Shown here: positions 28,421 to 62,772 of the stretch, one piece after another
How the letters are laid out: the number at the start of each line of letters is the position of its first letter
Position numbering within the stretch: position 1 is the first letter of the stretch
Sequence record: MT586120.1
Length of the DNA: 64,000 nucleotides
Reading direction: 5' to 3' (one strand)
The notes under the pieces: generated by a model
What the model was told of the DNA's origin: nothing
Database searches by the model: none
What the model saw: only the letters and a program-made list of their open reading frames with translations
Position numbers and translations under genes: made by a program

Positions 28421-28822
28421 ATGCTCAAGCCTCTTCTCGCAGCAATTATATTCTCTACGATGCCAGTTGCTACACTGGCACAGGAACAGGAACCATACGA
28501 TTACACTGGTGCTACACTTAGACAGCAGCAGTATCAGATCTATGAGCTAAACCGTCGCCTTCAGGTTCAAGGGAACCAGAGGGAGATACAAATGCTCCAA
28601 GATCGTGTAGCGAATGGAGGTCAGCCACCCCAGCCAACTCAAGTTATAGTTGAGCAAAGAACTAACCCCATAGTACCTATTTTAGGTGCTGCTTTAATTG
28701 GTGGTGCTATCATCTACGGTGCTAATCAAAACAACCGTAGCTATCACCACCACCACGAATACCACAGAAACGGTAATAGATACCGTATTTGTAGAGATCA
28801 CAAACGTCGTTACTATTGTTAA
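28421..28822 (+). CDS. secreted/membrane hypothetical protein
   Basis: Signal peptide MLKPLLAAII..VATLA; glycine-zipper ILGAALIGGAII. Confidence 0.7.
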   Translation: MLKPLLAAIIFSTMPVATLAQEQEPYDYTGATLRQQQYQIYELNRRLQVQGNQREIQMLQDRVANGGQPPQPTQVIVEQRTNPIVPILGAALIGGAIIYGANQNNRSYHHHHEYHRNGNRYRICRDHKRRYYC

Positions 28823-28824
28823 TT

Positions 28825-29034
28825 ATGGATTCCGTAGCACTATTCCTTTCTAGGGACTACACAATGAGTATCATTCAAGCATTACGTGAAGCAAAGGAGA
28901 GGTGTGATGGAGATGGGCGTAGGATTATGGCTAAACAATATGAAGAAGTTGAGACCATTATGCGTGCTCAACACGATATTGCCCAAAGCATTAGGGAAAA
29001 TATGGATCGGAACGGCGGCGACTACTCAATCTGA
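28825..29034 (+). CDS. hypothetical protein
   Basis: ORF; start uncertain. Confidence 0.55.
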   Translation: MDSVALFLSRDYTMSIIQALREAKERCDGDGRRIMAKQYEEVETIMRAQHDIAQSIRENMDRNGGDYSI

Positions 29035-29090
29035 ACCACTTACCAAAGTGTCCACTACCCCTTGCGGTTCTGCTCGTGAGGGGTTATATT
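29034..29090 (+). promoter_or_regulatory. repeated promoter cassette
   Basis: AACCACTT-accA-AAGTGTCCAC, hairpin, TATATT. Confidence 0.75.
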
Positions 29091-29145: not shown

Positions 29146-29961
29146 ATGAATAAACCATTCCTCAAGTGGGCAGGCAACAAGTTTCGTGTCCTTCCCCATC
29201 TCATTCCACATATCGGGTATCCAAAGACTTATTGTGAGCCATTTGGGGGTAGTTTATCTGTTGCATTGAATAATGCTGCTGATAAGTATATTCTAAATGA
29301 TATCAATAAAGACCTTGTAGCTATATACAATAACATTAATAGTGATGGTGAAGACTTTATTCAGTACTGTAATGAGTTGTTCATACCAACTAACAATACT
29401 AAAGAGGCATACTTAGATATACGTAGCCAGTTTAATACTTGTACTGATATGAGAGAACGTGCTCGTATCTTTGTTTATCTCAACCGCCACTGTTTCAATG
29501 GCTTGAGTAGATACAATAGTAAGGGTGGTTTCAATGTTCCTTTTGGTAAGTATGATTCACCTAAATGTCCTATTGATGAGATGAGATTCTTTCATAAGTA
29601 CTTTGAAGGTAAGGAAGTATCCTTTAATTCACTATCATTTGAGCACGAGTCACTATATTCTAGCTTAGGTGAAGGTGACGTTCTCTATATGGACCCACCA
29701 TATGTTCCTGCTACAGAGACAGCAAACTTTACGAGTTATGCTACAGAGGGATTTACTCACGACCAGCAGGTTAAGTTAGCTAACATTGCTGAGGAGTTAT
29801 CATCAAAAGGTGTTAAGGTTATTATAAGCAATCACGATGTACCAATTACTAGAGAATTATATAAGAACGCTAAAATCTACAGTATTCAAGTTAGTAGAAC
29901 CATTTCAGCAAAGAGTAGTAGTAGGAAGAAGGCAAGCGAGCTCATCGCAGTCTACGGATAA
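29146..29961 (+). CDS. dam: DNA adenine methyltransferase (Dam/D12 class)
   Basis: KPFLKWAGNK, EPFGGS, YLNRHCFNGL.RYN.KG.FNVPFG, YMDPPY. Confidence 0.95.
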   Translation: MNKPFLKWAGNKFRVLPHLIPHIGYPKTYCEPFGGSLSVALNNAADKYILNDINKDLVAIYNNINSDGEDFIQYCNELFIPTNNTKEAYLDIRSQFNTCTDMRERARIFVYLNRHCFNGLSRYNSKGGFNVPFGKYDSPKCPIDEMRFFHKYFEGKEVSFNSLSFEHESLYSSLGEGDVLYMDPPYVPATETANFTSYATEGFTHDQQVKLANIAEELSSKGVKVIISNHDVPITRELYKNAKIYSIQVSRTISAKSSSRKKASELIAVYG

Positions 29962-30016
29962 GCCACTTACCAAAGTGTCCACTAACCCACCCGGTGCTGC
30001 CGTGGTGGGTTATACT
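29961..30016 (+). promoter_or_regulatory. repeated promoter cassette
   Basis: AGCCACTT..AAGTGTCCAC, AACCCACC/GGTGGGTT hairpin, TATACT. Confidence 0.8.
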
Positions 30017-31958: not shown

Positions 31959-32468
31959 ATGCTAAAACATTTGTTCGTGGGAGCACTTATCTCTTTTTCT
32001 TGCTCCCCTGTGCTTGCTAACGGTCAATCTACCGTGTCTTCCAGTAGTAATGCACAAAATAACCAGAATAACAATGGAACTGTGAATCTTGCCCCTATGG
32101 GTGGTTCAAACTCCAACTATCAGATCAATTCTGTATCAAATAGCCAGTACCAATTCGGTCCTGGTATCTCTTGTCCCACACCTGAACTTGGTATTGGGGC
32201 TTTTGGGGGCAATAATAGCTCATTTGATTCTGATTATAGCAACGGTTCTAACAATATAGGTGCAACCTTAATGTTTACTACACCTTTGGGCGGTGATATT
32301 GGTCGTTATTGTAAAGAATTGGTACAGGAGATCACCAAACAACGGCAATTGGACACAAAGGTGACTATGATTCGCCAATGTGCGCAGTTTGCTCGGGAAG
32401 GTGTTATACTAGACACCGAACAGTTCCCCGAGTTCGCTATCTGCTCTGCTGTAACAGTCACTCGGTAA
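31959..32468 (+). CDS. secreted hypothetical protein
   Basis: Signal peptide; four Cys (SCPTP, RYCKE, RQCAQ, AICS). Confidence 0.75.
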   Translation: MLKHLFVGALISFSCSPVLANGQSTVSSSSNAQNNQNNNGTVNLAPMGGSNSNYQINSVSNSQYQFGPGISCPTPELGIGAFGGNNSSFDSDYSNGSNNIGATLMFTTPLGGDIGRYCKELVQEITKQRQLDTKVTMIRQCAQFAREGVILDTEQFPEFAICSAVTVTR

Positions 32469-32511
32469 ACTGTCCACTAATCCACGACAGCCTAGCCTAG
32501 TGGGTTATACT
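32466..32511 (+). promoter_or_regulatory. repeated promoter cassette
   Basis: AACTGTCCAC, hairpin, TATACT, CATACCAAACAAGG leader. Confidence 0.8.
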
Positions 32512-34294: not shown

Positions 34295-34597
34295 ATGGAT
34301 TTTATAGTAACAGTTAGAACATACACTGGTGCTGTTAAGTCAGTAGAAGTCAAGAACATGCCCGATGAGGATGCTGCCCGTGCTGAAGCGGTTAGCTTAA
34401 CCTTCGGGCGTGTTCTTTCTATTGAGAGGACAGATACTGAGGAAGTTGTAGTAGCTACTACACCAAAGAAGAAAAAGCGGAAACTACCTGAAATTGAAAG
34501 AGAACTGATGCCTGGTGAGACTGAAACTATCGTCACAGGATACGATAACAACCCACTAGCAGTTTTCACATATCTAAATGATGATGGGTTGGTGTGA
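34295..34597 (+). CDS. hypothetical protein
   Basis: ORF MDFIVTVRT... Confidence 0.65.
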   Translation: MDFIVTVRTYTGAVKSVEVKNMPDEDAARAEAVSLTFGRVLSIERTDTEEVVVATTPKKKKRKLPEIERELMPGETETIVTGYDNNPLAVFTYLNDDGLV

Positions 34598-34651
34598 CGG
34601 CTGATATAGTGTCCACCTAACCCCCACAGGGGTGGTTTTTTATTATATGAT
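34593..34651 (+). promoter_or_regulatory. repeated promoter cassette
   Basis: GTGACGG..AGTGTCCAC, CCCC/GGGG hairpin plus T-run, TATGAT. Confidence 0.75.
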
Positions 34652-34879: not shown

Positions 34880-34885
34880 TAAGAT

Positions 34886-34941
34886 AACCACTTCCTAAAC
34901 TGACCACTGAACCCCCACAGGGCACCCAAATGCCCTATACT
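34886..34941 (+). promoter_or_regulatory. repeated promoter cassette
   Basis: AACCACTT..AACTGACCAC, GGGCA/TGCCC hairpin, TATACT. Confidence 0.8.
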
Positions 34942-38420: not shown

Positions 38421-38422
38421 TA

Positions 38423-38477
38423 GACAGTTCTAATAGTGTCCACTGCCCCTTGCTAGGGGCTTTTTTGTTGTTATACT
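38423..38477 (+). promoter_or_regulatory. repeated promoter cassette
   Basis: GACAGTT..AGTGTCCAC, GCCCC/GGGGC plus T-run, TATACT. Confidence 0.8.
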
Positions 38478-39594: not shown

Positions 39595-40239
39595 ATGAAT
39601 AAGATATTTGCATTATTGGCTGCTGTCGTAGCAGCTACACCCGCACAAGCTGGGTTCATTATCCCTGATGATATTGTTCCACTAAGTGGAGAAAGAGCCA
39701 GTAGAATGTTCTGGCGTGGATGTATTGATGAGAAGGGTGAGATTACTAAGATAACTGTTAAGTGTGATAGAATCTTTAAGCCTAAACCAACCCAAGCAAG
39801 GGTAGAATGGAAGAACGCAAAGAAGTGTGAGGAATATACTCCTGGTTGTGTATCTGTTGATGCTAGTATTCAAGTTGGGGGCTTTCAGCTTTCAGTTCTA
39901 TCAGCTAGAACTAGAAGACGCCGTGGTCCTGGTGGTGGTTGGGAGTCATATTCTCAACTAGATATGGCTCTATCTAAGAAAGGTTTTGAGCAATATTCTA
40001 TCAACTGTACTGATCCTGATAGTGATATTAGAGTGCTAGATTTTGATGGTAAACCTAAGCATATGTATAGAACAACACAGTTTAGACTTGATCTATGTAA
40101 TAGTGTATTCCCTGAGCTTGAGCGTGATACAGCATATCAGTTGAAAGAGTTAGCTTGTAGGCTTACGAAGGACCCAAAAAAGAATAGAGAGTGTTGGATA
40201 GACTTTAAGGAGTGGAGAGCAAACAGGAGGTATAGATAG
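39595..40239 (+). CDS. secreted hypothetical protein
   Basis: Signal peptide MNKIFALLAAVVAATPAQA; multiple Cys. Confidence 0.75.
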   Translation: MNKIFALLAAVVAATPAQAGFIIPDDIVPLSGERASRMFWRGCIDEKGEITKITVKCDRIFKPKPTQARVEWKNAKKCEEYTPGCVSVDASIQVGGFQLSVLSARTRRRRGPGGGWESYSQLDMALSKKGFEQYSINCTDPDSDIRVLDFDGKPKHMYRTTQFRLDLCNSVFPELERDTAYQLKELACRLTKDPKKNRECWIDFKEWRANRRYR

Positions 40240-40295
40240 ACCACTTTGAGTAGTGTCCACTGCCCCAACACAGGGGCATTTTTATGCTCTATAAT
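40239..40295 (+). promoter_or_regulatory. repeated promoter cassette
   Basis: GACCACTT-tgagt-AGTGTCCAC, TGCCCC/GGGGCA plus T-run, TATAAT. Confidence 0.8.
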
Positions 40296-43742: not shown

Positions 43743-44144
43743 ATGACTAAAAACAAGCACAATGAGAATGTAGGATCTGATATTGAACGTTCTAATGAGC
43801 GCATTGATCAGACTGGTGAAGTATTCACTCCTATGGAACTGTGCCGTGAGATGGTCAACGAACTACCACTAGATGTACTACAGAATCCTAAGAGCACATT
43901 TATTGATAATTCTGCTGGGTCGGGCAACTTCATCATCGCTCTCCGTGACAGACTACTAGAATATCACGAGTTATCACATATCTTAGACAATATGCTCTAT
44001 ACTGTTGAGTTTATGGAGGATAATCACGCCGAGTTGTGTGAGAGAATAGGTGTGCCTGTTACTCACCCACATTATGTTAGAGCTGATGCTACCACATATG
44101 ATTATAGCTTTGGTGAGCCTATAGGATTAGAGGCATTCTTCTAG
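43743..44144 (+). CDS. stand-alone SAM-binding half of an N6-adenine methyltransferase
   Basis: TGEVFTP, FIDNSAGSGNF, LYTVE..EDN; no NPPY. Confidence 0.8.
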   Translation: MTKNKHNENVGSDIERSNERIDQTGEVFTPMELCREMVNELPLDVLQNPKSTFIDNSAGSGNFIIALRDRLLEYHELSHILDNMLYTVEFMEDNHAELCERIGVPVTHPHYVRADATTYDYSFGEPIGLEAFF

Positions 44145-44198
44145 CCACTTTGAGTAGTGTCCACTGCCCCACCACAGGGGCATTTTTAATGTTATGAT
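44143..44198 (+). promoter_or_regulatory. repeated promoter cassette
   Basis: 44-bp near-identity to the cassette at 40241. Confidence 0.8.
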
Positions 44199-44219: not shown

Positions 44220-44537
44220 ATGATCGAAGCTATCGCAGCTCCAAACACACAGGTCACTGAAGAGGGTGGACTCTTCTACATCACTATGAGCGTTGGTCCT
44301 GATGAGGTATGCACTGCTTGTTATATGCGCGACAAGGCGCAGAGAGTGGTCATTATCCAATTAGATACACCAGTGGAGTATAGAGGCAATGGCTACGCTA
44401 CAGCCCTCCTGGAGAGCATACAGAGGCGTGAGAAGACTGGTCCTATCCGTGTGATTAGTACTAGCCATGCCGTTGGTTTCTACAATAAGCTAGGATACAT
44501 TGAAGTATCACCATACGTGTTCCAAAGCTCAAACTGA
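44220..44537 (+). CDS. GNAT acetyltransferase
   Basis: EYRGNGYATALL, AVGFYNKLGY. Confidence 0.85.
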   Translation: MIEAIAAPNTQVTEEGGLFYITMSVGPDEVCTACYMRDKAQRVVIIQLDTPVEYRGNGYATALLESIQRREKTGPIRVISTSHAVGFYNKLGYIEVSPYVFQSSN

Positions 44538-44574
44538 CCACTGAACCCCCACAGGGCACCCAAATGCCCTATAC
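44531..44574 (+). promoter_or_regulatory. repeated promoter cassette
   Basis: AACTGACCAC, GGGCA/TGCCC, TATACT. Confidence 0.8.
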
Positions 44575-44598
44575 TATTCACATAAGCAACGGACACCA

Positions 44599-45492: not shown

Positions 45493-45719
45493 TGGATTGC
45501 ACTAGATGTCTACACTACTATGAAATACGTGGGAGAAAGATATGTCGCTCTCCCCATCTTGATGAGGAAGCACCTGTTGAACAGGAGAGATCTAGTTTAG
45601 GTCAATGCAATCAAGATGGAAAGAACTTTGAATTTTGTGTTTATAGGAAGGCACGTCACGTGTTTTGGGGCTCAATATATGATGAAAATGCAACTAGACT
45701 AGACCACTATCCAAACTGA
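45492..45719 (+). CDS. small Cys-containing protein
   Basis: CxxCxH, four further Cys. Confidence 0.6.
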   Translation: MDCTRCLHYYEIRGRKICRSPHLDEEAPVEQERSSLGQCNQDGKNFEFCVYRKARHVFWGSIYDENATRLDHYPN

Positions 45720-45757
45720 CCACTAACGTTCCACAAGGCACACAGATGCCTTATACT
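45702..45757 (+). promoter_or_regulatory. repeated promoter cassette
   Basis: GACCACTA..AACTGACCAC, AAGGCA/TGCCTT, TATACT. Confidence 0.8.
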
Positions 45758-46770: not shown

Positions 46771-47559
46771 ATGGAAACCAATTCAGAAACTATGAACAAG
46801 CTACTCAATGGTGAATGTCTTGAAGTTATGAAGACACTAGCTGATAATTCAATTGATATGGTTTTCTGTGACCTACCTTATGGTACTACACAGAACTCTT
46901 GGGATACTATCATCCCATTCGATGAGTTGTGGGCAGAGTATCATCGTATCGTCAAGATTGATGGTGCTATTGTACTAACAGCACAACCACCATTTGATAA
47001 GGTCTTAGCTTGTTCAAATCTAAAAGACTTCCGTTATGAATGGATATGGGAGAAGAATAAAGCAACTGGGCACCTAAATGCTAAGAAGATGCCTATGAAG
47101 GCACACGAGAACATACTAGTATTTTATAGAAAGCTTCCTACATATAACCCACAGATGACCACAGGTCATAAGCCAATGAATGCAGTATTGCCTAAGAGCA
47201 ATATGCCTGCACCAAAGGAGAAGAGAAACTATAACCACGTAGAAGAGCGACTAGGTAATCCTGGTGGTGGAACTAGTAGGTATCCAAGAGATACTGTTAG
47301 GTTCCCCGTTATCAACAATGATGACCCAAAGAAGTTCCACCCAACACAGAAACCTATCCCCTTGATTAAGTACTTCATCAAGACATATTCTAATCCAGGT
47401 GATGTTGTACTAGACAATTGTATGGGCTCAGGTTCTACCTGTATTGCTGCATCTAATCTAGATCGACAGTTTGTTGGTATTGAGATGAGTGAGGAATATT
47501 ACAACCTAGCAGTTGAGTGGGTCGAATCCGAACGTAGACTCACCCAGTTCTTTAACTGA
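46771..47559 (+). CDS. beta-class N4/N6 DNA methyltransferase
   Basis: GECLEVM, DLPYG, HENILVFY, HPTQKP, VVLDNCMGSGST. Confidence 0.92.
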   Translation: METNSETMNKLLNGECLEVMKTLADNSIDMVFCDLPYGTTQNSWDTIIPFDELWAEYHRIVKIDGAIVLTAQPPFDKVLACSNLKDFRYEWIWEKNKATGHLNAKKMPMKAHENILVFYRKLPTYNPQMTTGHKPMNAVLPKSNMPAPKEKRNYNHVEERLGNPGGGTSRYPRDTVRFPVINNDDPKKFHPTQKPIPLIKYFIKTYSNPGDVVLDNCMGSGSTCIAASNLDRQFVGIEMSEEYYNLAVEWVESERRLTQFFN

Positions 47560-47597
47560 CCACTGAACCACCACAGGGCACCCAAATGCCCTATACT
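47542..47597 (+). promoter_or_regulatory. repeated promoter cassette
   Basis: ACCCAGTT..AACTGACCAC, GGGCA/TGCCC, TATACT. Confidence 0.8.
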
Positions 47598-49764: not shown

Positions 49765-49955
49765 GTTTTTCACCAGCACTAGGTATATTAGTTGAGTATA
49801 AGGGAAGCGTAGGTGAGATTAAGTTCATTGATGACGTATATCTCACCATATGCACAAAGAGTAAGACTGATGGGATGATAGGTGACCTATGTTTGGTTGT
49901 CTACAAGCCAGAATGGGACCTAATCAAGATGATTGGTGATCGTAATAGACAGTAA
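49761..49955 (+). CDS. hypothetical protein
   Basis: VEYKG.VGEIKFID..YLTIC. Confidence 0.65.
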   Translation: MSFSPALGILVEYKGSVGEIKFIDDVYLTICTKSKTDGMIGDLCLVVYKPEWDLIKMIGDRNRQ

Positions 49956-49996
49956 GTAAAGTGTCCACATGCCCGACCCATCCACAACTACTATAG
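49948..49996 (+). promoter_or_regulatory. degenerate promoter cassette
   Basis: GACAGTA..AAGTGTCCAC; hairpin eroded. Confidence 0.55.
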
Positions 49997-50922: not shown

Positions 50923-51325
50923 AAACAATCACAATTTAGAGTCTGGATCATCACTGAACAGAAGTGATGATAGAATAATAGAGACCCAAGAGGTATTCAC
51001 TCCAATGGAGTTGTGCCATCTAATGGTACAAGACATACCATTAGATATTAGGAAGAATCCAAAAAGCACATTCTTAGACAATTCATCGGGTAGTGGTAAT
51101 TTTATAGTTGCCCTACTGGAAGACCTACAAAATTATCATTCTAGAGAACATATCATATCAAATATGCTCTATGCAGTTGAGCTTATGGAAGACAATCATA
51201 TAGAAATGTGTGAGCGTCTAGGTATATCAACAACCCACCCACACTTTGTGTGTCACGACGCATTAACATATGATTATAGTTTTAGCGAACCCCTCAATAC
51301 ATTAGATGCAATGCTATTCCACTAA
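50915..51325 (+). CDS. stand-alone SAM-binding half of a methyltransferase (paralogue of 43743)
   Basis: TQEVFTP, FLDNSSGSGNF, LYAVELMEDN. Confidence 0.8.
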   Translation: MSKNNHNLESGSSLNRSDDRIIETQEVFTPMELCHLMVQDIPLDIRKNPKSTFLDNSSGSGNFIVALLEDLQNYHSREHIISNMLYAVELMEDNHIEMCERLGISTTHPHFVCHDALTYDYSFSEPLNTLDAMLFH

Positions 51326-51371
51326 GCAAAGTGTCCACTGCCCCTTGATAGGGGCTTTTTTATGCTATAAT
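51319..51371 (+). promoter_or_regulatory. repeated promoter cassette
   Basis: AAGTGTCCAC, GCCCC/GGGGC plus T-run, TATAAT, TTCATACCAAAC. Confidence 0.8.
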
Positions 51372-51395: not shown

Positions 51396-51599
51396 ATGGC
51401 TTCTCACTACAATGGCTTCATGGATGACGCGACAGCAGCTCTACCTAATAGGTCCGAGGATGAGTTGACCGAGGTATTTTATTTACTTGAGTTGTTTAGT
51501 TCTCAATACACCCCCGAGGACGGGGACTATACAGAGTACCTAAAGACGAGATTAATCTCATATCATACATCATTAGGTATGATGGATCCAGATCAATAA
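51396..51599 (+). CDS. hypothetical acidic protein
   Basis: ORF between cassettes. Confidence 0.65.
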   Translation: MASHYNGFMDDATAALPNRSEDELTEVFYLLELFSSQYTPEDGDYTEYLKTRLISYHTSLGMMDPDQ

Positions 51600-51641
51600 G
51601 TGTCCACTAATACACCATAGCCCACCTAGGTGGGCTATACT
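51598..51641 (+). promoter_or_regulatory. repeated promoter cassette
   Basis: AAGTGTCCAC, perfect palindrome AGCCCACCTAGGTGGGCT, TATACT. Confidence 0.8.
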
Positions 51642-52755: not shown

Positions 52756-52840
52756 GAGCATACATTGCCCACTCATAGACTATAATTACAAGAGTAGACA
52801 CACCCCCACCTCAATCAAACAAACTACACACAAATAACAA

Positions 52841-52999
52841 ATGAAAACATCACACACTGTATTAATTTCAGCTACAACAGCATCTGCATTCGTCATTGGT
52901 AAGAACTATGCACCTCGAACAACTTGGGACATTTTTATTGTTTTGTTGCTAACTGCTATTATGAGTCTTATGATTCAATTTGTGAGGGAAAATAGTTGA
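52841..52999 (+). CDS. 52-aa two-TM protein, paralogue 1 (not in track)
   Basis: MKTSHTVLISATTASAFVIG...VRENS. Confidence 0.65.
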   Translation: MKTSHTVLISATTASAFVIGKNYAPRTTWDIFIVLLLTAIMSLMIQFVRENS

Positions 53000-53054
53000 G
53001 GTATATTCTAATTCCACCCCCACCTCAATCAAACAAACTACACACAAATAACAA

Positions 53055-53213
53055 ATGAAAAACTTACACATTGCAGCAATTTCAGCGGTATTATCATTTA
53101 CATTTATTATTGGATTAACATATGTACCTGAAACAACTGGTTATTTTATTGCTGGTTCTGTATTAACTGCTGTTATTAGTCTTGTTATTGGTTCTATGAG
53201 GGAAATTAGTTGA
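53055..53213 (+). CDS. 52-aa two-TM protein, paralogue 2 (not in track)
   Basis: MKNLHIAAISAVLSFTFIIG...MREIS; same leader and trailer as paralogue 1. Confidence 0.65.
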   Translation: MKNLHIAAISAVLSFTFIIGLTYVPETTGYFIAGSVLTAVISLVIGSMREIS

Positions 53214-54529: not shown

Positions 54530-54754
54530 CATAGAGTACATAGAGCCTATTAGCTCCATAGAGTCCATAGAGCCTATTAGCTCCATAGAGCCTATTAGCT
54601 CCATAGAGTCCATAGAGCCTATTAGCTCCATAGAGTCCATAGAGCCTATTAGCTCCATAGAGTCCATAGAGTCCATAGAGTCCATAGAGCCTATTAGCTC
54701 CATAGAGTCCATAGAGCCTATTAGCTCCATAGAGTCCATAGAGTCCATAGAGTC
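54530..54754. repeat. two-unit tandem repeat: 11x CATAGAGTC (one variant) and 7x CATAGAGCCTATTAGCTC
   Basis: Parsed by hand; 225 bp. Confidence 0.92.
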
Positions 54755-55351: not shown

Positions 55352-55590
55352 GTAATACTGCGCTGTGTATAACCTTCGCGTGTGATATACTGCGGTGCAT
55401 ATACTCTGTGTGCCTGCATATACTGCGCTGTGTATAACCTTCGCGCTAGTATATACTGCGCTGTGTATGCCTGCGGCGCACATATTCACAGCGTAACACA
55501 GCATATAATATACAGCATACACGCAGTATATAATACGCAGCGCACGCAGTATATACTCACACACATACAACAATATACTGCGGGAGCTGT
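55352..55590. repeat. cluster of ATATACTGCG motifs in both orientations
   Basis: About five forward and two reverse copies; TACTGCGCTGTGTATAACCTTCGCG twice. Confidence 0.8.
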
Positions 55591-55791
55591 CACTCTCGCA
55601 GTATTTTTGTGTGTCTCGCTGCGCCCCCTCTGATAAAGGCACAACGGACTGCGGAATCTCTTAAGGATCCTGGAGATATTATAACATATGCGTATCATGC
55701 AGCGCAAGCGAGTCTCATAGTACTCTCATATATACTATTCTAGGTTTTTCCTAGATTATGTGCTATAATATATCTTCACCACCTTGGGCTA

Positions 55792-56012: not shown

Positions 56013-56069
56013 GTGCCAATAGGTGAAGTGTCCACAAAACCGAATATTTACCCCAGGATGCCTTATAGT
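56013..56069 (+). promoter_or_regulatory. repeated promoter cassette
   Basis: GTGCCAAT..AAGTGTCCAC, TATAGT. Confidence 0.7.
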
Positions 56070-56396: not shown

Positions 56397-56600
56397 ATGA
56401 ATCTTACAAACGACCAGCGCCTAGCTCTTGCTCAACGTATCACTGACGAGTTTAAATTGTTCGTTAAAGAAGAACTAGTATATCAAGTTGATGATATGAA
56501 AGATAACGACCAGCTGAATCACGATTACTATATTACATCTAGCGATCAAGAGGATATCACAAAACTAGTAATTGACCTCATTGCTGTGCCAGTTAGCTAA
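56397..56600 (+). CDS. hypothetical protein
   Basis: ORF ending inside next cassette. Confidence 0.65.
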   Translation: MNLTNDQRLALAQRITDEFKLFVKEELVYQVDDMKDNDQLNHDYYITSSDQEDITKLVIDLIAVPVS

Positions 56601-56642
56601 GTGTCCACTAAATCCCCCACTGGTTCGCTAGTGGGTTATATT
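56586..56642 (+). promoter_or_regulatory. repeated promoter cassette
   Basis: GTGCCAGTT-agct-AAGTGTCCAC, CCCAC/GTGGG, TATATT. Confidence 0.8.
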
Positions 56643-56666
56643 AATCACATCAACACAAGAACCCCA

Positions 56667-56855
56667 ATGACCTCCGATCTCATCGAACTAATGGAAGCAC
56701 AGGGATCCGATGGAATCCTAGAAATGATGGCTGATAGAGATGGTTCAGCTTTCTTGCTTGATAGGCTCTTTGCTTCAATGGATGAGACGGAAGTTGCCGA
56801 GTGGACCACCTGGTTAAAGACCAGTTTGAAAACCTACACATCAAACCACCCATAG
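56667..56855 (+). CDS. hypothetical protein
   Basis: ORF between cassettes. Confidence 0.6.
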   Translation: MTSDLIELMEAQGSDGILEMMADRDGSAFLLDRLFASMDETEVAEWTTWLKTSLKTYTSNHP

Positions 56856-56875
56856 GGTCCTCAATGCCCTATACT
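56819..56875 (+). promoter_or_regulatory. repeated promoter cassette (dyad eroded)
   Basis: GACCAGTT, AATGCCCTATACTAATCACATCAACACAGG. Confidence 0.7.
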
Positions 56876-56898
56876 AATCACATCAACACAGGACCCCA

Positions 56899-57096
56899 AT
56901 GGACATCAGAGTATACTGTACATCTGAGGAGAGTTTAAACCAAGCAGTGGAGCTTATCCAAATGCTAGACGATAATGCTAGCATCTCCACGTGGGAGCCT
57001 GATGGGGACGATGGGACCTATGGGGCATTCGTTGATGGTATTGACGATCAACTAGCCACCACCTTGGGACAGTTGTACGAAGTGTCCACTGACTGA
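56899..57096 (+). CDS. acidic hypothetical protein
   Basis: ORF reading through next dyad (QLYEVSTD). Confidence 0.65.
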   Translation: MDIRVYCTSEESLNQAVELIQMLDDNASISTWEPDGDDGTYGAFVDGIDDQLATTLGQLYEVSTD

Positions 57097-57123
57097 CCCA
57101 CTGGGTCCTCAATGCCCTATACT
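57066..57123 (+). promoter_or_regulatory. repeated promoter cassette
   Basis: GGGACAGTT..AAGTGTCCAC, TATACT. Confidence 0.8.
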
Positions 57124-57147: not shown

Positions 57148-57303
57148 ATGAAAAAGTCATTCAAGGTTTGTCTCTCAAAGATGGATAATCCAAATTTCCT
57201 TAATTTTATTATTGTTGAGGATTGTGTTGATATGGATGAATGTGTTGAACATATTCACTCCACCGAAAGAGGATGGGTGATTGATTCTATCAAGCAGCTT
57301 TGA
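57148..57303 (+). CDS. small hypothetical protein
   Basis: ORF between cassettes. Confidence 0.6.
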   Translation: MKKSFKVCLSKMDNPNFLNFIIVEDCVDMDECVEHIHSTERGWVIDSIKQL

Positions 57304-57304
57304 T

Positions 57305-57361
57305 GGGACACTTAGCTAAGTGACCACTGAACCACCCATAGGGCACTCAATGCCCTATACT
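57305..57361 (+). promoter_or_regulatory. repeated promoter cassette
   Basis: Near-perfect dyad GGACACTT-AGCT-AAGTGACC, GGGCA/TGCCC, TATACT. Confidence 0.85.
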
Positions 57362-57385
57362 AATCACATCAACACAAAACAACCA

Positions 57386-57706
57386 ATGACCACTGCCCCA
57401 CATTTCGTTCGTTCTACAATGAGCCTCGGACCTACTGAGAGCATCTGCTTCAAAGTGAGCTGTGACGCAAAAGCACAATGGGAGAATGGAATCTTCCACA
57501 ACTCACGATATGGAATCTTCTTTCTTTGTGAGGAGGGAGGGAAGCTGAAGCTTGAGCTCACATCAAAGGGACTCGACACCATTAAGTTCCGTAAGTGTAC
57601 AGTCAAGAGTGAAGCAGGGGCAGTGAACCGCATCCTAAAATGGATGGGTGATATTATGGGAGACAGTATCTTCCTTCCTATGCCTGAGTTTGAGGAAGCA
57701 AACTAA
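57386..57706 (+). CDS. conserved hypothetical protein
   Basis: WENGIFHNSRYGIF...KFRKCTVKS. Confidence 0.75.
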   Translation: MTTAPHFVRSTMSLGPTESICFKVSCDAKAQWENGIFHNSRYGIFFLCEEGGKLKLELTSKGLDTIKFRKCTVKSEAGAVNRILKWMGDIMGDSIFLPMPEFEEAN

Positions 57707-57772
57707 CAGCGCTCTATTTAACCTTCGCAACCATTCTAACATACTGCGCAGCATTTAACAAGCGCGCACACA

Positions 57773-57796
57773 TATACTGCGCACGCAGTATATAAT
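57773..57796 (+). promoter_or_regulatory. palindrome ATATACTGCG-CA-CGCAGTATAT overlapping TATAAT
   Basis: Perfect 10-bp arms; same motif as the 55.4-kb cluster. Confidence 0.7.
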
Positions 57797-57816
57797 ATAC
57801 ATCACACACATTACTA

Positions 57817-57984
57817 ATGAACAACTACATCGACGACGCAGCACTCTATGAAGATATACTGCGCGAGGACGAAGTATATAATGGGCTACGCAGGCTTGAG
57901 CTGCCTGTAAGGGATGGACGCAGGCAACAGCGTAGACGCAGGGAGCGCCAGCGTCAAGCTTGTTACAATAAGTATCACAACTAG
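57817..57984 (+). CDS. small Arg-rich protein (not in track)
   Basis: MNNYIDDAALYED...RRQQRRRRERQRQ. Confidence 0.5.
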   Translation: MNNYIDDAALYEDILREDEVYNGLRRLELPVRDGRRQQRRRRERQRQACYNKYHN

Positions 57985-58039
57985 GACAGTATACTAACTG
58001 TCCACCAAACCAACACAGCGCAGCCATCTGCGCTATATT
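57984..58039 (+). promoter_or_regulatory. repeated promoter cassette
   Basis: GGACAGTA..AACTGTCCAC, AGCGCA/TGCGCT, TATATT. Confidence 0.8.
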
Positions 58040-58488: not shown

Positions 58489-58545
58489 GTGCCAGTTGCG
58501 CTAGTGTCCACTAAATCACCCACTGGGCTCCTGGTGGGTTATATT
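58489..58545 (+). promoter_or_regulatory. repeated promoter cassette
   Basis: GTGCCAGTT..AGTGTCCAC, CCCAC/GTGGG, TATATT. Confidence 0.8.
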
Positions 58546-58568: not shown

Positions 58569-58811
58569 ATGAACACCCTCAAAGATCTCCAAGCTAGAGT
58601 TGCCGCACTAATTGAACAGCAAGGCGAAGATTCTGTATGTGCTGCGTGGATTTACACTGGCGAAGATGTTATTAGATATGACGAAAATTGTGATGCAATA
58701 CGTCAGCCCAAAGAATTGAGAGATAAAGTAATAAATGGTTTAGATGACTATGATTACATTTATCAAGTTATTGATGAGGCTATTACTCAAGAATTAGATG
58801 AGTGTGTGTGA
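58569..58811 (+). CDS. hypothetical protein
   Basis: LIEQQGED..CAAWIYTGEDV. Confidence 0.75.
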   Translation: MNTLKDLQARVAALIEQQGEDSVCAAWIYTGEDVIRYDENCDAIRQPKELRDKVINGLDDYDYIYQVIDEAITQELDECV

Positions 58812-58864
58812 CAGTTGGGCTAGTGTCCACTGGGGCTAGCAGCTCCCCACCTAGCTGCTACAAT
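58808..58864 (+). promoter_or_regulatory. repeated promoter cassette
   Basis: GTGACAGTT..AGTGTCCAC, GGGG/CCCC, GCTACAATTGATTCATACCAAAC. Confidence 0.85.
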
Positions 58865-58890: not shown

Positions 58891-59091
58891 ATGAACACCG
58901 TTGAAATCAACTACGAAATCGCCAAGCTTCGTGAGGAGCGTCAGCAGCTGCTGAACCGTGCGAACGTAATCGGTGATTGTATCCAAGAGCTTGCGCAGCT
59001 GCGCACCAAACAGCAACTTGCCTCAAAGCGTGAGCACGATGAGCGCTTCGAGTCCAGTGAGGACCTATTCGCTGAGATGTTTGGCGGTTGA
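58891..59091 (+). CDS. coiled-coil hypothetical protein
   Basis: ORF between cassettes. Confidence 0.7.
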   Translation: MNTVEINYEIAKLREERQQLLNRANVIGDCIQELAQLRTKQQLASKREHDERFESSEDLFAEMFGG

Positions 59092-59138
59092 TTAAGTGGC
59101 ACAAGGGGGCTAGGCAAGCCCCCACCACCTGCTACAAT
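59083..59138 (+). promoter_or_regulatory. repeated promoter cassette
   Basis: AAGTGGCAC, GGGGGCT/AGCCCCC, TACAAT. Confidence 0.8.
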
Positions 59139-59472: not shown

Positions 59473-59739
59473 ATGATCAGAACTCAAATCACTGTTGAAA
59501 TCAAGCGTAGCGAGTGGGAATGTTACATCGACACCCCAGATTCAGTCATCGAAACTATTAACAACTACTTTGCCTTTGTATTACAATCACGTGATACGGC
59601 ATTAGAAGCACAAGCTGAAATCTTTAAGTTTATGTGCATGTTTAGTGAGTTTGGTTTCTATGATAGTGAGCCTAGGCAATGTGCAACAGATACTATTAAC
59701 GATTTCTTCGGGGCAAGCTTGAGCAGGTGGGACAGTTGA
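59473..59739 (+). CDS. hypothetical protein
   Basis: FSEFGFYDSEP; ends inside next dyad. Confidence 0.7.
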   Translation: MIRTQITVEIKRSEWECYIDTPDSVIETINNYFAFVLQSRDTALEAQAEIFKFMCMFSEFGFYDSEPRQCATDTINDFFGASLSRWDS

Positions 59740-59786
59740 GCTAGTGGCACAAGGGAGCCGCCACTGGCTCCCACAGCTGCTATGAT
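59729..59786 (+). promoter_or_regulatory. repeated promoter cassette
   Basis: GGGACAGTT..AGTGGCAC, GGGAGCC/GGCTCCC, TATGAT. Confidence 0.8.
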
Positions 59787-59813: not shown

Positions 59814-60005
59814 ATGAACATTCAAGTCAACGGCTACGCAATCGACACCCTTAAGCAAGCGCTTCAAGAGTCTTCGATGCTATGGCAAGAGCGTATCCTG
59901 CAAGCCGAGCGCGGCGAGCGTCAAAACCTCAGCATCGAGGGAGCCCGTATGATGCAAGATGACTTGAGGGACATCCTAGAGCAAATCAGGTTGCAAGACG
60001 CCTGA
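59814..60005 (+). CDS. hypothetical protein
   Basis: ORF between cassettes. Confidence 0.7.
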   Translation: MNIQVNGYAIDTLKQALQESSMLWQERILQAERGERQNLSIEGARMMQDDLRDILEQIRLQDA

Positions 60006-60007
60006 TC

Positions 60008-60052
60008 AACTGGCACACGGGAGCCACACAGGCTCCCACCACCTGCTACAAT
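60008..60052 (+). promoter_or_regulatory. repeated promoter cassette
   Basis: AACTGGCAC, GGGAGCC/GGCTCCC, TACAAT. Confidence 0.8.
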
Positions 60053-60078: not shown

Positions 60079-60336
60079 ATGAACGGCTGGACTAACTACG
60101 AAACCTGGAACGCATCACTTTGGATCAGCAACGAGGAGTTCCTCTACAACACCGCTCGCGCTTGCGTGACCTATTGTGACCCCAGCGAGCAGCCTTGGAC
60201 CAAGTTCGTCCGTTGTATGACCGAGGGACAGATCGGCAGCTTCCTTGGTGAGACTGGCGATGGCGTCCGCTGGGATGATACCAGCATCAACGCCGATGAG
60301 ATGAACGAGATGATGCTAGAGTTAGTCGCTGACTGA
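60079..60336 (+). CDS. conserved phage hypothetical protein
   Basis: NGWTNYETWN..LWI.N.E.LY...TGDGVRW. Confidence 0.8.
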   Translation: MNGWTNYETWNASLWISNEEFLYNTARACVTYCDPSEQPWTKFVRCMTEGQIGSFLGETGDGVRWDDTSINADEMNEMMLELVAD

Positions 60337-60381
60337 ACTGGCACAAGGGGGCTCGCAGCCCCCTCCCACAGCTGCTACAAT
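60336..60381 (+). promoter_or_regulatory. repeated promoter cassette
   Basis: AACTGGCAC, GGGGGCT/AGCCCCC, TACAAT. Confidence 0.8.
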
Positions 60382-60696: not shown

Positions 60697-60999
60697 ATGA
60701 AAACCACACTTTCCACAATCTTCAGCCGCAATAACGTGATGAATGCCCTCCTGGCTCTCTGCACTGCTATCGAGTTCTGCTACGATATGGGCGCACGCTT
60801 CGGTACCTGGTATCGCCAGGGAGGGCGTGAGGAGCTCATCAAAGCCGTTGCCCTTATCATCACCGCAATCGTCTGGACCATCTCTACAGCCCGTCTGGGG
60901 GCACAGGTAGTCCGCACCAACGGACCAACCTGGCTCGCACAGGCTAACGCAACACGCCATCGTATCAGCCGCGCATTCAGCTACGAGTATGCCAGCTGA
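60697..60999 (+). CDS. membrane-associated hypothetical protein
   Basis: Hydrophobic segments. Confidence 0.65.
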   Translation: MKTTLSTIFSRNNVMNALLALCTAIEFCYDMGARFGTWYRQGGREELIKAVALIITAIVWTISTARLGAQVVRTNGPTWLAQANATRHRISRAFSYEYAS

Positions 61000-61046
61000 G
61001 ACACTGACACAAGGGGGCTAGGCAAGCCCCCATCACCTGCTACAAT
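60990..61046 (+). promoter_or_regulatory. repeated promoter cassette
   Basis: TGCCAGCT..ACTGACAC, GGGGGCT/AGCCCCC, TACAAT. Confidence 0.8.
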
Positions 61047-61076: not shown

Positions 61077-61307
61077 ATGTCCAGCACCACTTACACCCAG
61101 GCAGCTTACGCCGAAGCAATCCGCCGCCTCTCGGCTGGCTACGTTTCAGAGTTTGCTGAGTTTGCTGCAGGTGATGAGAGGATGCATGAGCTGATGATGG
61201 AACTTGCTTCTGAGTTCGTTGATGCCAATCTACCCATCGTCAGGGAGGAGGACGCAATCGACGTAGCTGCTGAGCTCCACTTGGGCATCACAATCCGTGC
61301 CGTGTGA
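61077..61307 (+). CDS. acidic hypothetical protein
   Basis: ORF between cassettes. Confidence 0.75.
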   Translation: MSSTTYTQAAYAEAIRRLSAGYVSEFAEFAAGDERMHELMMELASEFVDANLPIVREEDAIDVAAELHLGITIRAV

Positions 61308-61361
61308 CGGCTGACCAACTGACACAAGGGGGATAGCTAAGCCCCCACCACCTGCTACAAT
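61304..61361 (+). promoter_or_regulatory. repeated promoter cassette
   Basis: GTGACGGCT..AACTGACAC, hairpin, TACAAT. Confidence 0.8.
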
Positions 61362-61389: not shown

Positions 61390-61704
61390 ATGCGCAAGAT
61401 TGAAATCCAAATGAACCGCGCTGTTCAGTCTGGCACCAATTTCAGCCAAGCTAACACCTCAGTTCATCATCACGAGGGTGTGGCTGTGGTTCGCCTGCAC
61501 GGTAACAAGATCGCTGAGGTAGGCGACGATTTCATCACTCTCTTCGATGGTGGCTTCCAATCCACTACCACCAAGAGCCGCCTCAATGCCTTGATGGCTG
61601 AGTTCTGCTCACCCGGTGAGAACGTATTCCAGAAAGCTTACCAGTGGTTCATCAAAGCCAATGGCGTCACCGTTCCATTTGAGTCAGGTGTGACACTCCG
61701 CTAA
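61390..61704 (+). CDS. conserved cyanophage hypothetical protein
   Basis: MRKIE.QMN.A, V.LHGNKIA, DGG.QS.TTKSRLNAL. Confidence 0.8.
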   Translation: MRKIEIQMNRAVQSGTNFSQANTSVHHHEGVAVVRLHGNKIAEVGDDFITLFDGGFQSTTTKSRLNALMAEFCSPGENVFQKAYQWFIKANGVTVPFESGVTLR

Positions 61705-61748
61705 ACTGGCACACGCTCCCTAGCGGGAGCTCCCCCAGCTGCTACAAT
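61690..61748 (+). promoter_or_regulatory. repeated promoter cassette
   Basis: GTGACACT..AACTGGCAC, GCTCCC/GGGAGC, TACAAT. Confidence 0.8.
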
Positions 61749-61774: not shown

Positions 61775-62365
61775 ATGACCAAACTCACCACGCTTCAGGT
61801 TGCAGCCAAGCTCAAAACCACTGATTTCAGTGCATTCCCTAAGCCCGGTAAGAATAAGGGCGACCGTGGGCAGCTTCTTGAGTTAGCGCTTGGCGTTGCT
61901 AATTCTAGCGACTTGACTGACCTCCTCGATGGTGAGATTAAATCATTCACTCAAGGGCAGACGATTGCAGTCACCCAAGTTAAGCATTGTCTTACCGAAA
62001 TCATCGAAGAGAAAGTATCATTCAAAGAGAGTAAAGTCGGAGAGAAGTTAAAGCAAGCAATTTACGTAGGCTTCACTCGCAATAACGATTACATTGGTAC
62101 TGAGATTGTAAACGAAGAAAATTCAACAGCACATTATCAAGAATTGGAAGAGGATTACAACTTCATTGCTGATAGCATCCGCAACGCATTCGATACTAAT
62201 ACAACATTAGCAACTATCACTGGACCTAACAAACTCCTGCAAATTCGTACCAAGGCATCTAAAACCAACGGCAGATATGTGCCCCTATGTTATGCTGGTC
62301 AGACAATGAAAGATAAGGCAATGGCGTTCTATCTTACCGCTGGTTTCGGTAAAGAAATCATGTGA
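61775..62365 (+). CDS. MutH/Sau3AI-family PD-(D/E)xK endonuclease
   Basis: NKGDRGQLLELALG, D..DGEIK, LLQIRTKA, AFYL..GF parallel MutH motifs. Confidence 0.75.
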   Translation: MTKLTTLQVAAKLKTTDFSAFPKPGKNKGDRGQLLELALGVANSSDLTDLLDGEIKSFTQGQTIAVTQVKHCLTEIIEEKVSFKESKVGEKLKQAIYVGFTRNNDYIGTEIVNEENSTAHYQELEEDYNFIADSIRNAFDTNTTLATITGPNKLLQIRTKASKTNGRYVPLCYAGQTMKDKAMAFYLTAGFGKEIM

Positions 62366-62421
62366 GCCAGTTGAGCCACTGGCACAGGGAGCCTAGCAGG
62401 GCTCCCCCCAGCTGCTACAAT
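62364..62421 (+). promoter_or_regulatory. repeated promoter cassette
   Basis: GAGCCAGTT..ACTGGCAC, GGGAGCC/GGCTCCC, TACAAT. Confidence 0.8.
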
Positions 62422-62447: not shown

Positions 62448-62729
62448 ATGGGAATCTCACTCGATCAGCAAGTCGCACAGCTCGCAGCCGAAGGTCATCA
62501 AGAGATTGCAGTCATCAAACTCCCTAGTCAGGCAACCCGCAAGCGTCGCAAGCCTAGCAAGCGTCGCACTCCACAAACCACTAACGCGGTCAGCCAAACA
62601 ACCTACACTCAAACCGAGAGCCGCAACCTAGGCAAGATTAGTTCAGCCTATGCGCGTCAAGTCCGAGCAGATAGAAGGGCAGCGGCTCAACAAAAAGCAG
62701 CCGAGCTTAACGGTCAGCCAATCTTCTAA
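62448..62729 (+). CDS. basic hypothetical protein
   Basis: Arg/Lys-rich RKRRKPSKRR. Confidence 0.7.
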   Translation: MGISLDQQVAQLAAEGHQEIAVIKLPSQATRKRRKPSKRRTPQTTNAVSQTTYTQTESRNLGKISSAYARQVRADRRAAAQQKAAELNGQPIF

Positions 62730-62772
62730 GAGGCACAAGGGGGCTAGCAGCTCCCCCCCTAGCTGCTACAAT
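62715..62772 (+). promoter_or_regulatory. repeated promoter cassette
   Basis: AAGAGGCAC, GGGGG/CCCCC, TACAAT. Confidence 0.8.

Follow-up and report, generated by a model that had tools for sequence, protein, structure and literature searches.

A conserved imperfect dyad as a candidate upstream recognition element of -10-only promoters in the small-gene region of cyanophage S-CAM7

A short inverted repeat at positions 57305–57327 sits at the boundary between two small phage genes and recurs, again and again, at similar boundaries nearby, which raises the question of what it is for: a binding site on double-stranded DNA, a folded transcript, or a site for recombination. The window, by which we mean the whole 64,000-nucleotide stretch of DNA analysed, is identical to bases 1–64000 of Synechococcus phage S-CAM7 isolate 0809CC03 (MT586120), a 221-kb T4-like cyanomyovirus (Kyanoviridae, Mazuvirus) with Synechococcus WH7803 as isolation host. 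The dyad region is a long series of small + strand ORFs at ~29–64 kb, with function unassigned. A sequence-only reading of the window had described a conserved dyad operator at the 5' edge of each gene cassette, and we find that the three copies it quoted are exact as written (57306–57325, 56586–56608 and 57066–57089) and that the dyad at 57305–57327 is genuine. The exact right arm, AGTGTCCAC, is present 15 times in the window, all but once on the + strand; dinucleotide-preserving shuffles give 0.62 ± 0.79. The entire 221-kb genome holds 15 on the + strand and one on the - strand, with 14 of the + strand copies within 29–59 kb; counting A[G/C]TG[T/A]CCAC variants gives 25 + strand copies vs four on the - strand. 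A listing of all intergenic regions reveals right-arm variants one base shorter (e.g., GTGGCAC, CTGGCAC and CTGACAC) at 59–63 kb, and with variants included there are ~30 dyad copies within the window, at 29–63 kb. These copies follow a common layout, from the 3' end of one small ORF to the start of the next. The dyad often overlaps the 3' end of the preceding ORF, for which it supplies the stop codon in several copies, and in most copies an ATG, nearly always the start of the next + strand ORF, is found ~24–31 nt 3' of a -10 hexamer.

The focal copy illustrates the order of parts. Its left arm, GGGACACTT (57305–57313, + strand), lies directly 3' of the stop codon of the preceding ORF, which ends at 57303, and its right arm, A-AGTGACCAC (57318–57327, + strand), differs by one substitution from AGTGTCCAC and would be positioned at about -49 to -41 relative to the presumed transcription start. 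A 28-bp spacer follows, in which a G+C-rich hairpin with a 5-bp stem and a 5-nt loop (57341–57355, + strand; -9.7 kcal/mol, z -4.4) occupies the -35 location. The -10 hexamer TATACT (57356–57361, + strand), 28 bp past the right arm, leads into a conserved leader that runs to the probable true ATG at 57386 (57362–57388, + strand).

All other copies described here are likewise on the + strand. Complete copies, running from left arm to -10, surround the focal one at 56013–56069 (spacer without a hairpin), 56586–56642 (the stop codon of the preceding ORF, 56598–56600, overlaps the junction of spacer and right arm), 57066–57123 (the entire dyad lies within the 3' end of ORF 56899–57096), 57983–58039 (a perfect 7-bp palindrome, GGACAGT / ACTGTCC), 58489–58545, and 58808–58864, where the left arm contains the TGA that terminates ORF 58569–58811. 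Further 5', complete copies are found at 29033–29090, upstream of the dmt methyltransferase gene, and at 29960–30016, 32455–32511 (right arm ACTGTCCAC), 34594–34651 (terminator-like hairpin and T run), 34885–34941 (right arm ACTGACCAC), 38421–38477 (the spacer holds a canonical intrinsic-terminator hairpin with a T run), 40238–40295, 44142–44198, 45701–45757 and 47541–47597 (both with right arm ACTGACCAC), 51316–51371 (27-bp spacing) and 51585–51641. Two copies are partial: 44519–44575, with right arm ACTGACCAC, has no recognisable left arm, and 49946–49968 is a dyad alone, with no hairpin or -10, directly 5' of the ATG of the next ORF. The shorter right arms define a series of variant copies spaced 30 bp from their -10: 59080–59138 (AAGTGGCAC, with a -10 that reads TGcTACAAT), 59728–59786 (TAGTGGCAC), 59994–60052 and 61690–61748 (both AACTGGCAC), 60988–61046 (CACTGACAC), 61303–61361 (AACTGACAC), 62363–62421 (CACTGGCAC) and 62715–62772 (a degenerate copy, AGAGGCAC); another AACTGGCAC copy, at 60322–60381, has a spacing of 31 bp.

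Several observations accompany this inventory. A match resembling the CACTGGCAC variant, with left arm GCCAGTT and 31 bp to TACACT, falls at 28473–28518 within CDS 28421–28822, and could be due to chance or mark an internal promoter. Past the window, the same block is found at S-CAM7 117197, 120432, 184295 and 221279, as isolated copies each with a terminator-like hairpin. The neighbours of these outlying copies are replication and other genes, and one copy lies at the extreme end of the linear record; if the genome is circular, that copy lies 5' of gene 1, which encodes a single-stranded DNA-binding protein. Within the window, the annotated CDS starts at 56631, 57112, 57350 and 29975 fall inside the promoter block, in the hairpin 5' of the -10. 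In-frame ATGs occur 12 codons past the first three of these, at 56667, 57148 and 57386, and since they follow the conserved leader, the N-termini annotated from 56631, 57112 and 57350 are probably too long; we identified no start codon 3' of the annotated start at 29975. Two adjacent 52-codon ORFs at 52841 and 53055 share an identical 40-nt leader (window 52800–53060), an indication of recent tandem duplication. Another palindrome family, TATACTGCG..CGCAGTATA, unrelated to the dyad, overlaps TATAAT-like boxes at 55500–55610 and 57765–57800; it forms several repeats in the long non-coding stretch at 54.8–55.8 kb and appears again 5' of 57817, and may represent another promoter or operator class. 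The same non-coding stretch carries small indels between S-CAM7 isolates, at about 54612–54673 and 55438–55577.

We find that the two arms of the dyad are unequal. Alignment of 207 copies from S-CAM7, Syn9 and viral contigs (the last among the matches listed) shows a nearly invariant right arm and a degenerate left arm, G[A/C]CA[G/C]TT, with 57–79% conservation per position, so that the inverted repeat seen earlier is a true dyad with arms that are not equivalent. The variable 4–6 bp spacer attributed to it gives way to a nearly fixed one: among the matches listed, 184 of 208 copies have 7 nt separating the cores CA[G/C]T and [G/C]TG and another 21 have 8 nt, and the 7-nt gap, present in 88% of copies, sets the cores one turn of the helix apart. 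Likewise, the interval to the -10, given before as roughly 25–35 bp, is far tighter: of 25 genomic copies, 22 have 27–29 bp and 18 of these exactly 28 bp, where a density of 0.0082 -10-like hexamers per nt predicts ~0.6 cases at 27–29 bp by chance. This spacing is not an artefact of the search, because the 25 genomic copies were picked by the arm alone. The shorter right-arm variants, which the database pattern did not select, give a sharp peak of their own at 30–31 bp from the -10; the constant spacing of the TACAAT subfamily at 59–63 kb could reflect recent duplication instead of selection.

Between the right arm and the -10, S-CAM7 has little that resembles a -35. The -35 hexamer is matched no more often than chance predicts, in agreement with the earlier remark that most copies lack TTGACA; a -35 is absent (three or fewer of six matches) in 18 of 22 S-CAM7 copies in which a -10 is present, and in most copies both a -35 and a consistent TG extension are lacking. 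A scan of 55.5–59.6 kb for two-hexamer sigma-70 promoters shows no enrichment, with 13 found vs 10.6 ± 3.0 expected. What the 28-bp spacer does contain in S-CAM7 is a strong hairpin, in 20 of 22 copies (mean -10.4 kcal/mol, z -3.6), often with a T run after it and thus resembling an intrinsic terminator. If transcription starts ~7 nt 3' of the -10, the element would span about -63 to -41; given that assumed start, its centre falls near -52, which matches neither the classic class I nor the classic class II position of activators.

This layout, with a dyad at the 3' end of each preceding ORF and a strong terminator-like hairpin directly after it, would also be expected if the dyad itself folded, as a stem-loop in the mRNA of the preceding gene or as a cruciform in the DNA, and were the first of two hairpins of a terminator or 3'-end module by which that mRNA is stabilised or terminated. 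There are a few good palindromes, such as 57983–58005 at -10.9 kcal/mol, the viral loci L024, L088 and L121 have perfect 8–9 bp arms, and the promoter-early stem-loop (PeSL) cassettes of other T4-like phages place a stem-loop directly 5' of the promoter. The folding of most copies argues against it, however. The 25-nt S-CAM7 dyads average only -3.1 kcal/mol (z -1.2), five of 22 remain unfolded, and the commonest form combines a G-G clash at the central pair with a 1x2 internal loop. The central pair is complementary in 21–26% of copies (21% vs 19% in controls), and the letters at this position in the two arms, among the matches listed, are GG in 123 copies, CC in 31, GC in 32 and CG in 22, counts that include paralogous copies and are not independent events; the same letter is enriched and there is no compensation. 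Among very divergent phages the right arm retains its sequence, whereas the true hairpin beside it retains only its structure and is free to change in sequence, a permissive-threshold search finds no matching Rfam family, and a fixed distance to a -10 would make no sense for an RNA 3' element. Weak folding, lack of compensation, fixed spacing and a retained sequence together favour a double-stranded DNA element over a stem-loop of RNA or cruciform DNA, which we regard as very unlikely. As judged from these sequence features, the dyad is most likely a recognition element read as double-stranded DNA at about -63 to -41.

We then find the same architecture well beyond S-CAM7. Syn9, from a different genus, carries the element with right arms AGTGTCCAC, GGTGTCTAC and GGTGGCAC upstream of the small ORFs gp55, gp61, gp63, gp68, gp73, gp75, gp78 and gp79, and among the matches listed it is shared by Syn9, a phage genome from a Prochlorococcus single cell and ~100 marine viral contigs. 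A scan of IMG/VR with a pattern made of the right arm and a -10 at 27–29 bp, in which the left arm was not demanded, returns at least 119 viral contigs, and both arms are present in most of the matches listed; the left-arm template is matched at seven or more of nine positions in 87 of 142 copies (among the matches listed) vs 184 of 2000 random windows. The viral loci among the matches listed span 32–47% G+C, over which the right arm is unchanged and the 28-bp spacer is free to vary. The spacer hairpin is strong in about one-third of the environmental copies among the matches listed and absent in about another third, and a fair -35 match (at least four of six) is found in 36% of them vs 13% of random sequence. 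This last figure implies that the element is not a strict replacement for the -35, and the variation in both hairpin and -35 among environmental copies identifies the upstream element as the constant part and the -35 space as the free part. A similarity search captures none of this breadth: distant BLAST of one 85-bp cassette against phage records recovers S-CAM7 isolates only, because the element is too short for BLAST.

The prospect that hosts use the same dyad fares less well. An exact-pattern scan for the full architecture across 185,579 species genomes, a weak test that degenerate host sites could escape, yields 16 matches, of which the convincing ones are phage or island DNA; it gives no sign of a host regulon, and in none of these genomes did the full architecture turn up in the context of a host chromosome. 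One convincing match is a 189-kb contig in a Prochlorococcus single-cell genome that carries tail-fibre genes and is thus from an infecting phage; others are on a few marine metagenome-assembled contigs, and a further one is in the 82-kb single-cell contig of Synechococcus sp. AG-670-B23 (locus L140, 4857–5911). Here a complete block, in DNA of 49% G+C, lies directly 3' of a tyrosine-integrase gene, and this copy may be part of a phage-derived island in the host genome or of a co-sorted mobile element.

The sequence-only reading had offered a recombinase-type core site as one of its two interpretations, and comparison of isolates bears directly on this. Inverted arms around a short spacer at the edge of every cassette are what one might expect of an integron-like or lox-like core at which a site-specific recombinase inserts and excises small genes, and the copy adjoining the integrase gene in the Synechococcus single-cell contig fits the same idea. 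Between MT586120 and KU686213, which are 98% identical isolates, several modules have been replaced, and these are bounded by the blocks. In one module, identity extends up to the final base of AGTGTCCAC at 49968, the end of the solitary dyad at 49946–49968, and returns at AGTGTCCAC at 51599, the right arm of the copy at 51585–51641, so that the right arm forms the exact border of this module at either end. In a second, however, divergence starts right past the -10 at 40295 (copy 40238–40295), and in a third the ORF 61775–62365, next after the variant copy at 61690–61748, is replaced alone, between its start codon and the left arm that follows. Relatives that lack single genes are seen in contigs from marine RNA libraries, with joints in the repeated leader, e.g., 56646 to 56880 with 11 shared letters; the RNA runs that match this DNA are assembled marine contigs that may contain DNA, and they show no transcript ends, being informative for cassette joints and silent on transcription. 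Besides the right arm, the places where junctions occur thus include the leader, the start codon, the stop codon or left arm, and the sequence past the -10, so that they share no single crossover point. Nor would a fixed distance to the -10 be required of a recombination site, and the whole-genome S-CAM7 annotation, judged by product names, lists no integrase or recombinase besides UvsX, UvsY and UvsW. Junctions at several positions in the block point to homologous exchange within conserved DNA and not to a recombinase acting on the dyad, and from the sequences compared the cassette swaps appear to fit PeSL-like homologous shuffling. We therefore set aside the recombinase interpretation, with junctions at three places in the block and in the leader and no integrase named in the annotation, as the least probable of the alternatives considered here.

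We favour the interpretation, to which we assign a probability of roughly 0.65, that the dyad is the upstream double-stranded DNA site of a class of phage promoters with a -10 and no -35, at which a putative factor recruits host RNA polymerase. The other earlier proposal, an activator that replaces recognition of the -35, survives in that the element is a fixed-position, conserved and strand-specific candidate site 5' of a -10-only promoter, and requires amendment in that the dyad is systematically imperfect. The site would be read in two parts, a left core CA[G/C]T and a right core A[G/C]TG one helical turn apart, with flanks GTG and CAC. A sequence-specific factor, already there when the phage DNA enters, would bind the element and recruit or stabilise host RNA polymerase at the -10, substituting for the contact between sigma and the -35; it might be carried in by the virion, belong to the RNA polymerase holoenzyme, or be a protein that is conserved throughout the marine picocyanobacteria. 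Each small gene of the 29–63 kb region would in this way have its own, presumably early, promoter. The -35 space would be freed and, in S-CAM7, usually be occupied by the terminator hairpin of the upstream gene, so that one compact block could end one gene and start the next, and the block, repeated ~30 times, would offer passive homology for swaps of gene cassettes between relatives. Early timing, binding by a protein and activation over repression are features that we infer for the element.

The same geometry could instead serve repression. Two half-sites one helical turn apart are reminiscent of the operators of classic dimeric repressors, and the presence of one site on ~30 promoters of a single gene class might allow a phage repressor, made early, to shut off the early promoters together at the switch to middle expression; the promoters would then fire on the -10 alone or with other help, and some environmental copies with their own -35-like hexamer might need no activator. 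The site lies entirely 5' of -41, however, clear of both the -10 and the start and so poorly placed for steric repression, and most S-CAM7 copies, which have no -35 or consistent TG, would be very weak promoters unless positively helped. A search for a DNA-binding gene that could encode such a repressor found no candidate: Syn9 gp230, annotated as a transcriptional regulator, was checked and rejected as the binder, as it lacks any Pfam domain and S-CAM7 offers only a weak relative. We consider a repressor operator unlikely, and it, the RNA hairpin and the recombinase site are each less likely than an upstream recognition element.

Other promoter types are recognizable in the same genome. A host-like promoter, TTGACA-17-TACAAT, lies 5' of 28421, and a T4-type late promoter box, TATAAATA, is found past the window 5' of 65783, 66528 and 67282 (S-CAM7 65700–67290; locus L002, 1700–3290), three tandem paralogous genes of ~220–240 codons with near-identical upstream regions. 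Promoters with the upstream element, host-like promoters and T4-type late promoters would fit a three-class programme.

A comparable division is reportedly known from the cyanophages Syn9 and P-TIM40, with a novel regulatory element for early genes and host-like promoters for middle genes. Both promoter elements are said to be abundant and conserved among T4-like cyanophages. The S-CAM7 element is probably the early element of Doron et al. 2016 (ISME J 10:1437), to which we liken it by its reported properties, and we equate the two because the S-CAM7 element precedes the Syn9 small-ORF cluster gp55–gp79. The likeness extends to its not being host-like, to its position before small genes expected to be early, and to its abundance in cyanomyovirus genomes and marine viral contigs. 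The papers examined that cite or are related to Doron et al. 2016 do not give the sequence of the early element, and a full-text search that combined the motif letters with 'cyanophage' returned nothing relevant.

The closest structural parallel is with the PeSL cassettes of T4-like phages, which have both hexamers of a sigma-70-type promoter (-35 and -10), A/T-rich sequence upstream, and a stem-loop 5' of the -35 (PMC2839356, PMC4122927), and which undergo modular shuffling in other T4-like phages (Arbiol et al. 2010, PMC2839356; Comeau et al. 2014, PMC4122927). Both unite terminator and promoter in a composite block that recurs between the small ORFs of hyperplastic regions, with a ribosome-binding site and an ATG after it, and at both, close relatives differ by insertions, deletions and replacements. 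The S-CAM7 block differs in having no -35, in the placement of its strong stem-loop between the upstream element and the -10, and in a G/C-containing, sequence-specific element where PeSL has an A/T-rich region. The T4-like cyanophages have neither motA nor asiA. The middle promoters of T4 itself combine a -10 with a MotA box, TGCTT, at -30, and are read by MotA and AsiA. The S-CAM7 promoters resemble these in the pairing of a -10 with a phage-specific upstream box that replaces the -35, and differ in the position of the box, -30 for TGCTT vs -63 to -41 for the S-CAM7 element, and in timing, as T4 middle promoters require early phage proteins whereas the S-CAM7 element precedes genes expected to be early.

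Cellular systems offer partial analogies. Promoters of the NtcA type and those with response-regulator boxes such as the Pho box also join a -10-only promoter to a two-part site, 5' of or replacing the -35, with half-sites about one helical turn apart. Direct reading against the consensus bears out the earlier statement that the dyad matches neither NtcA (GTA-N8-TAC) nor CRP (TGTGA-N6-TCACA), and the centre of the S-CAM7 element, near -52, differs from the -41.5 of NtcA and CRP sites. Comparison with the consensuses of NtcA, CRP, the cyanobacterial LexA box, the RpaB-binding HLR1 and the cyanobacterial Pho box gave no fit. UP elements likewise have two subsites 5' of the core promoter, at roughly -57 to -47 and -46 to -38, but are A/T tracts contacted in the minor groove by the C-terminal domain of the alpha subunit, whereas the S-CAM7 element contains G/C and is conserved base by base. 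A sigma-54 -24 box (TGGCAC), which the variant right arm resembles, was rejected since no GC element is present at the right distance and since cyanobacteria are not known to have sigma-54.

The S-CAM7 element is thus most likely a member of an already reported class and its novelty is modest; with the element most likely in the literature already, the gain lies in its anatomy and testability and not in discovery. A more specific proposal, which we advance tentatively and at less than even odds, is that a single factor present at the time of infection, either delivered by the virion or universal to Prochlorococcus and marine Synechococcus, replaces the sigma/-35 contact while a terminator occupies the -35 space, and that the asymmetry of the arms reflects an asymmetric or two-protein complex and not a simple homodimer. 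If true, this would be a 'terminator inside the promoter' design, which is not known from other T4-like phages. The repeated block would also account for the swaps of small genes among close phage relatives, and the element may serve as a marker for early-gene annotation and start-codon correction in cyanophage genomes. T4-like cyanophages kill a large share of the ocean's commonest photosynthetic cells. Since they have no MotA or AsiA, it is not understood which proteins let them take over host transcription within the first minutes after infection. The element offers a precisely delimited target on the DNA, in which two cores lie one turn of the helix apart and 28 bp from a -10 with no -35; present in ~30 copies in one genome and also in many uncultured relatives, it would be a practical bait for the factor.
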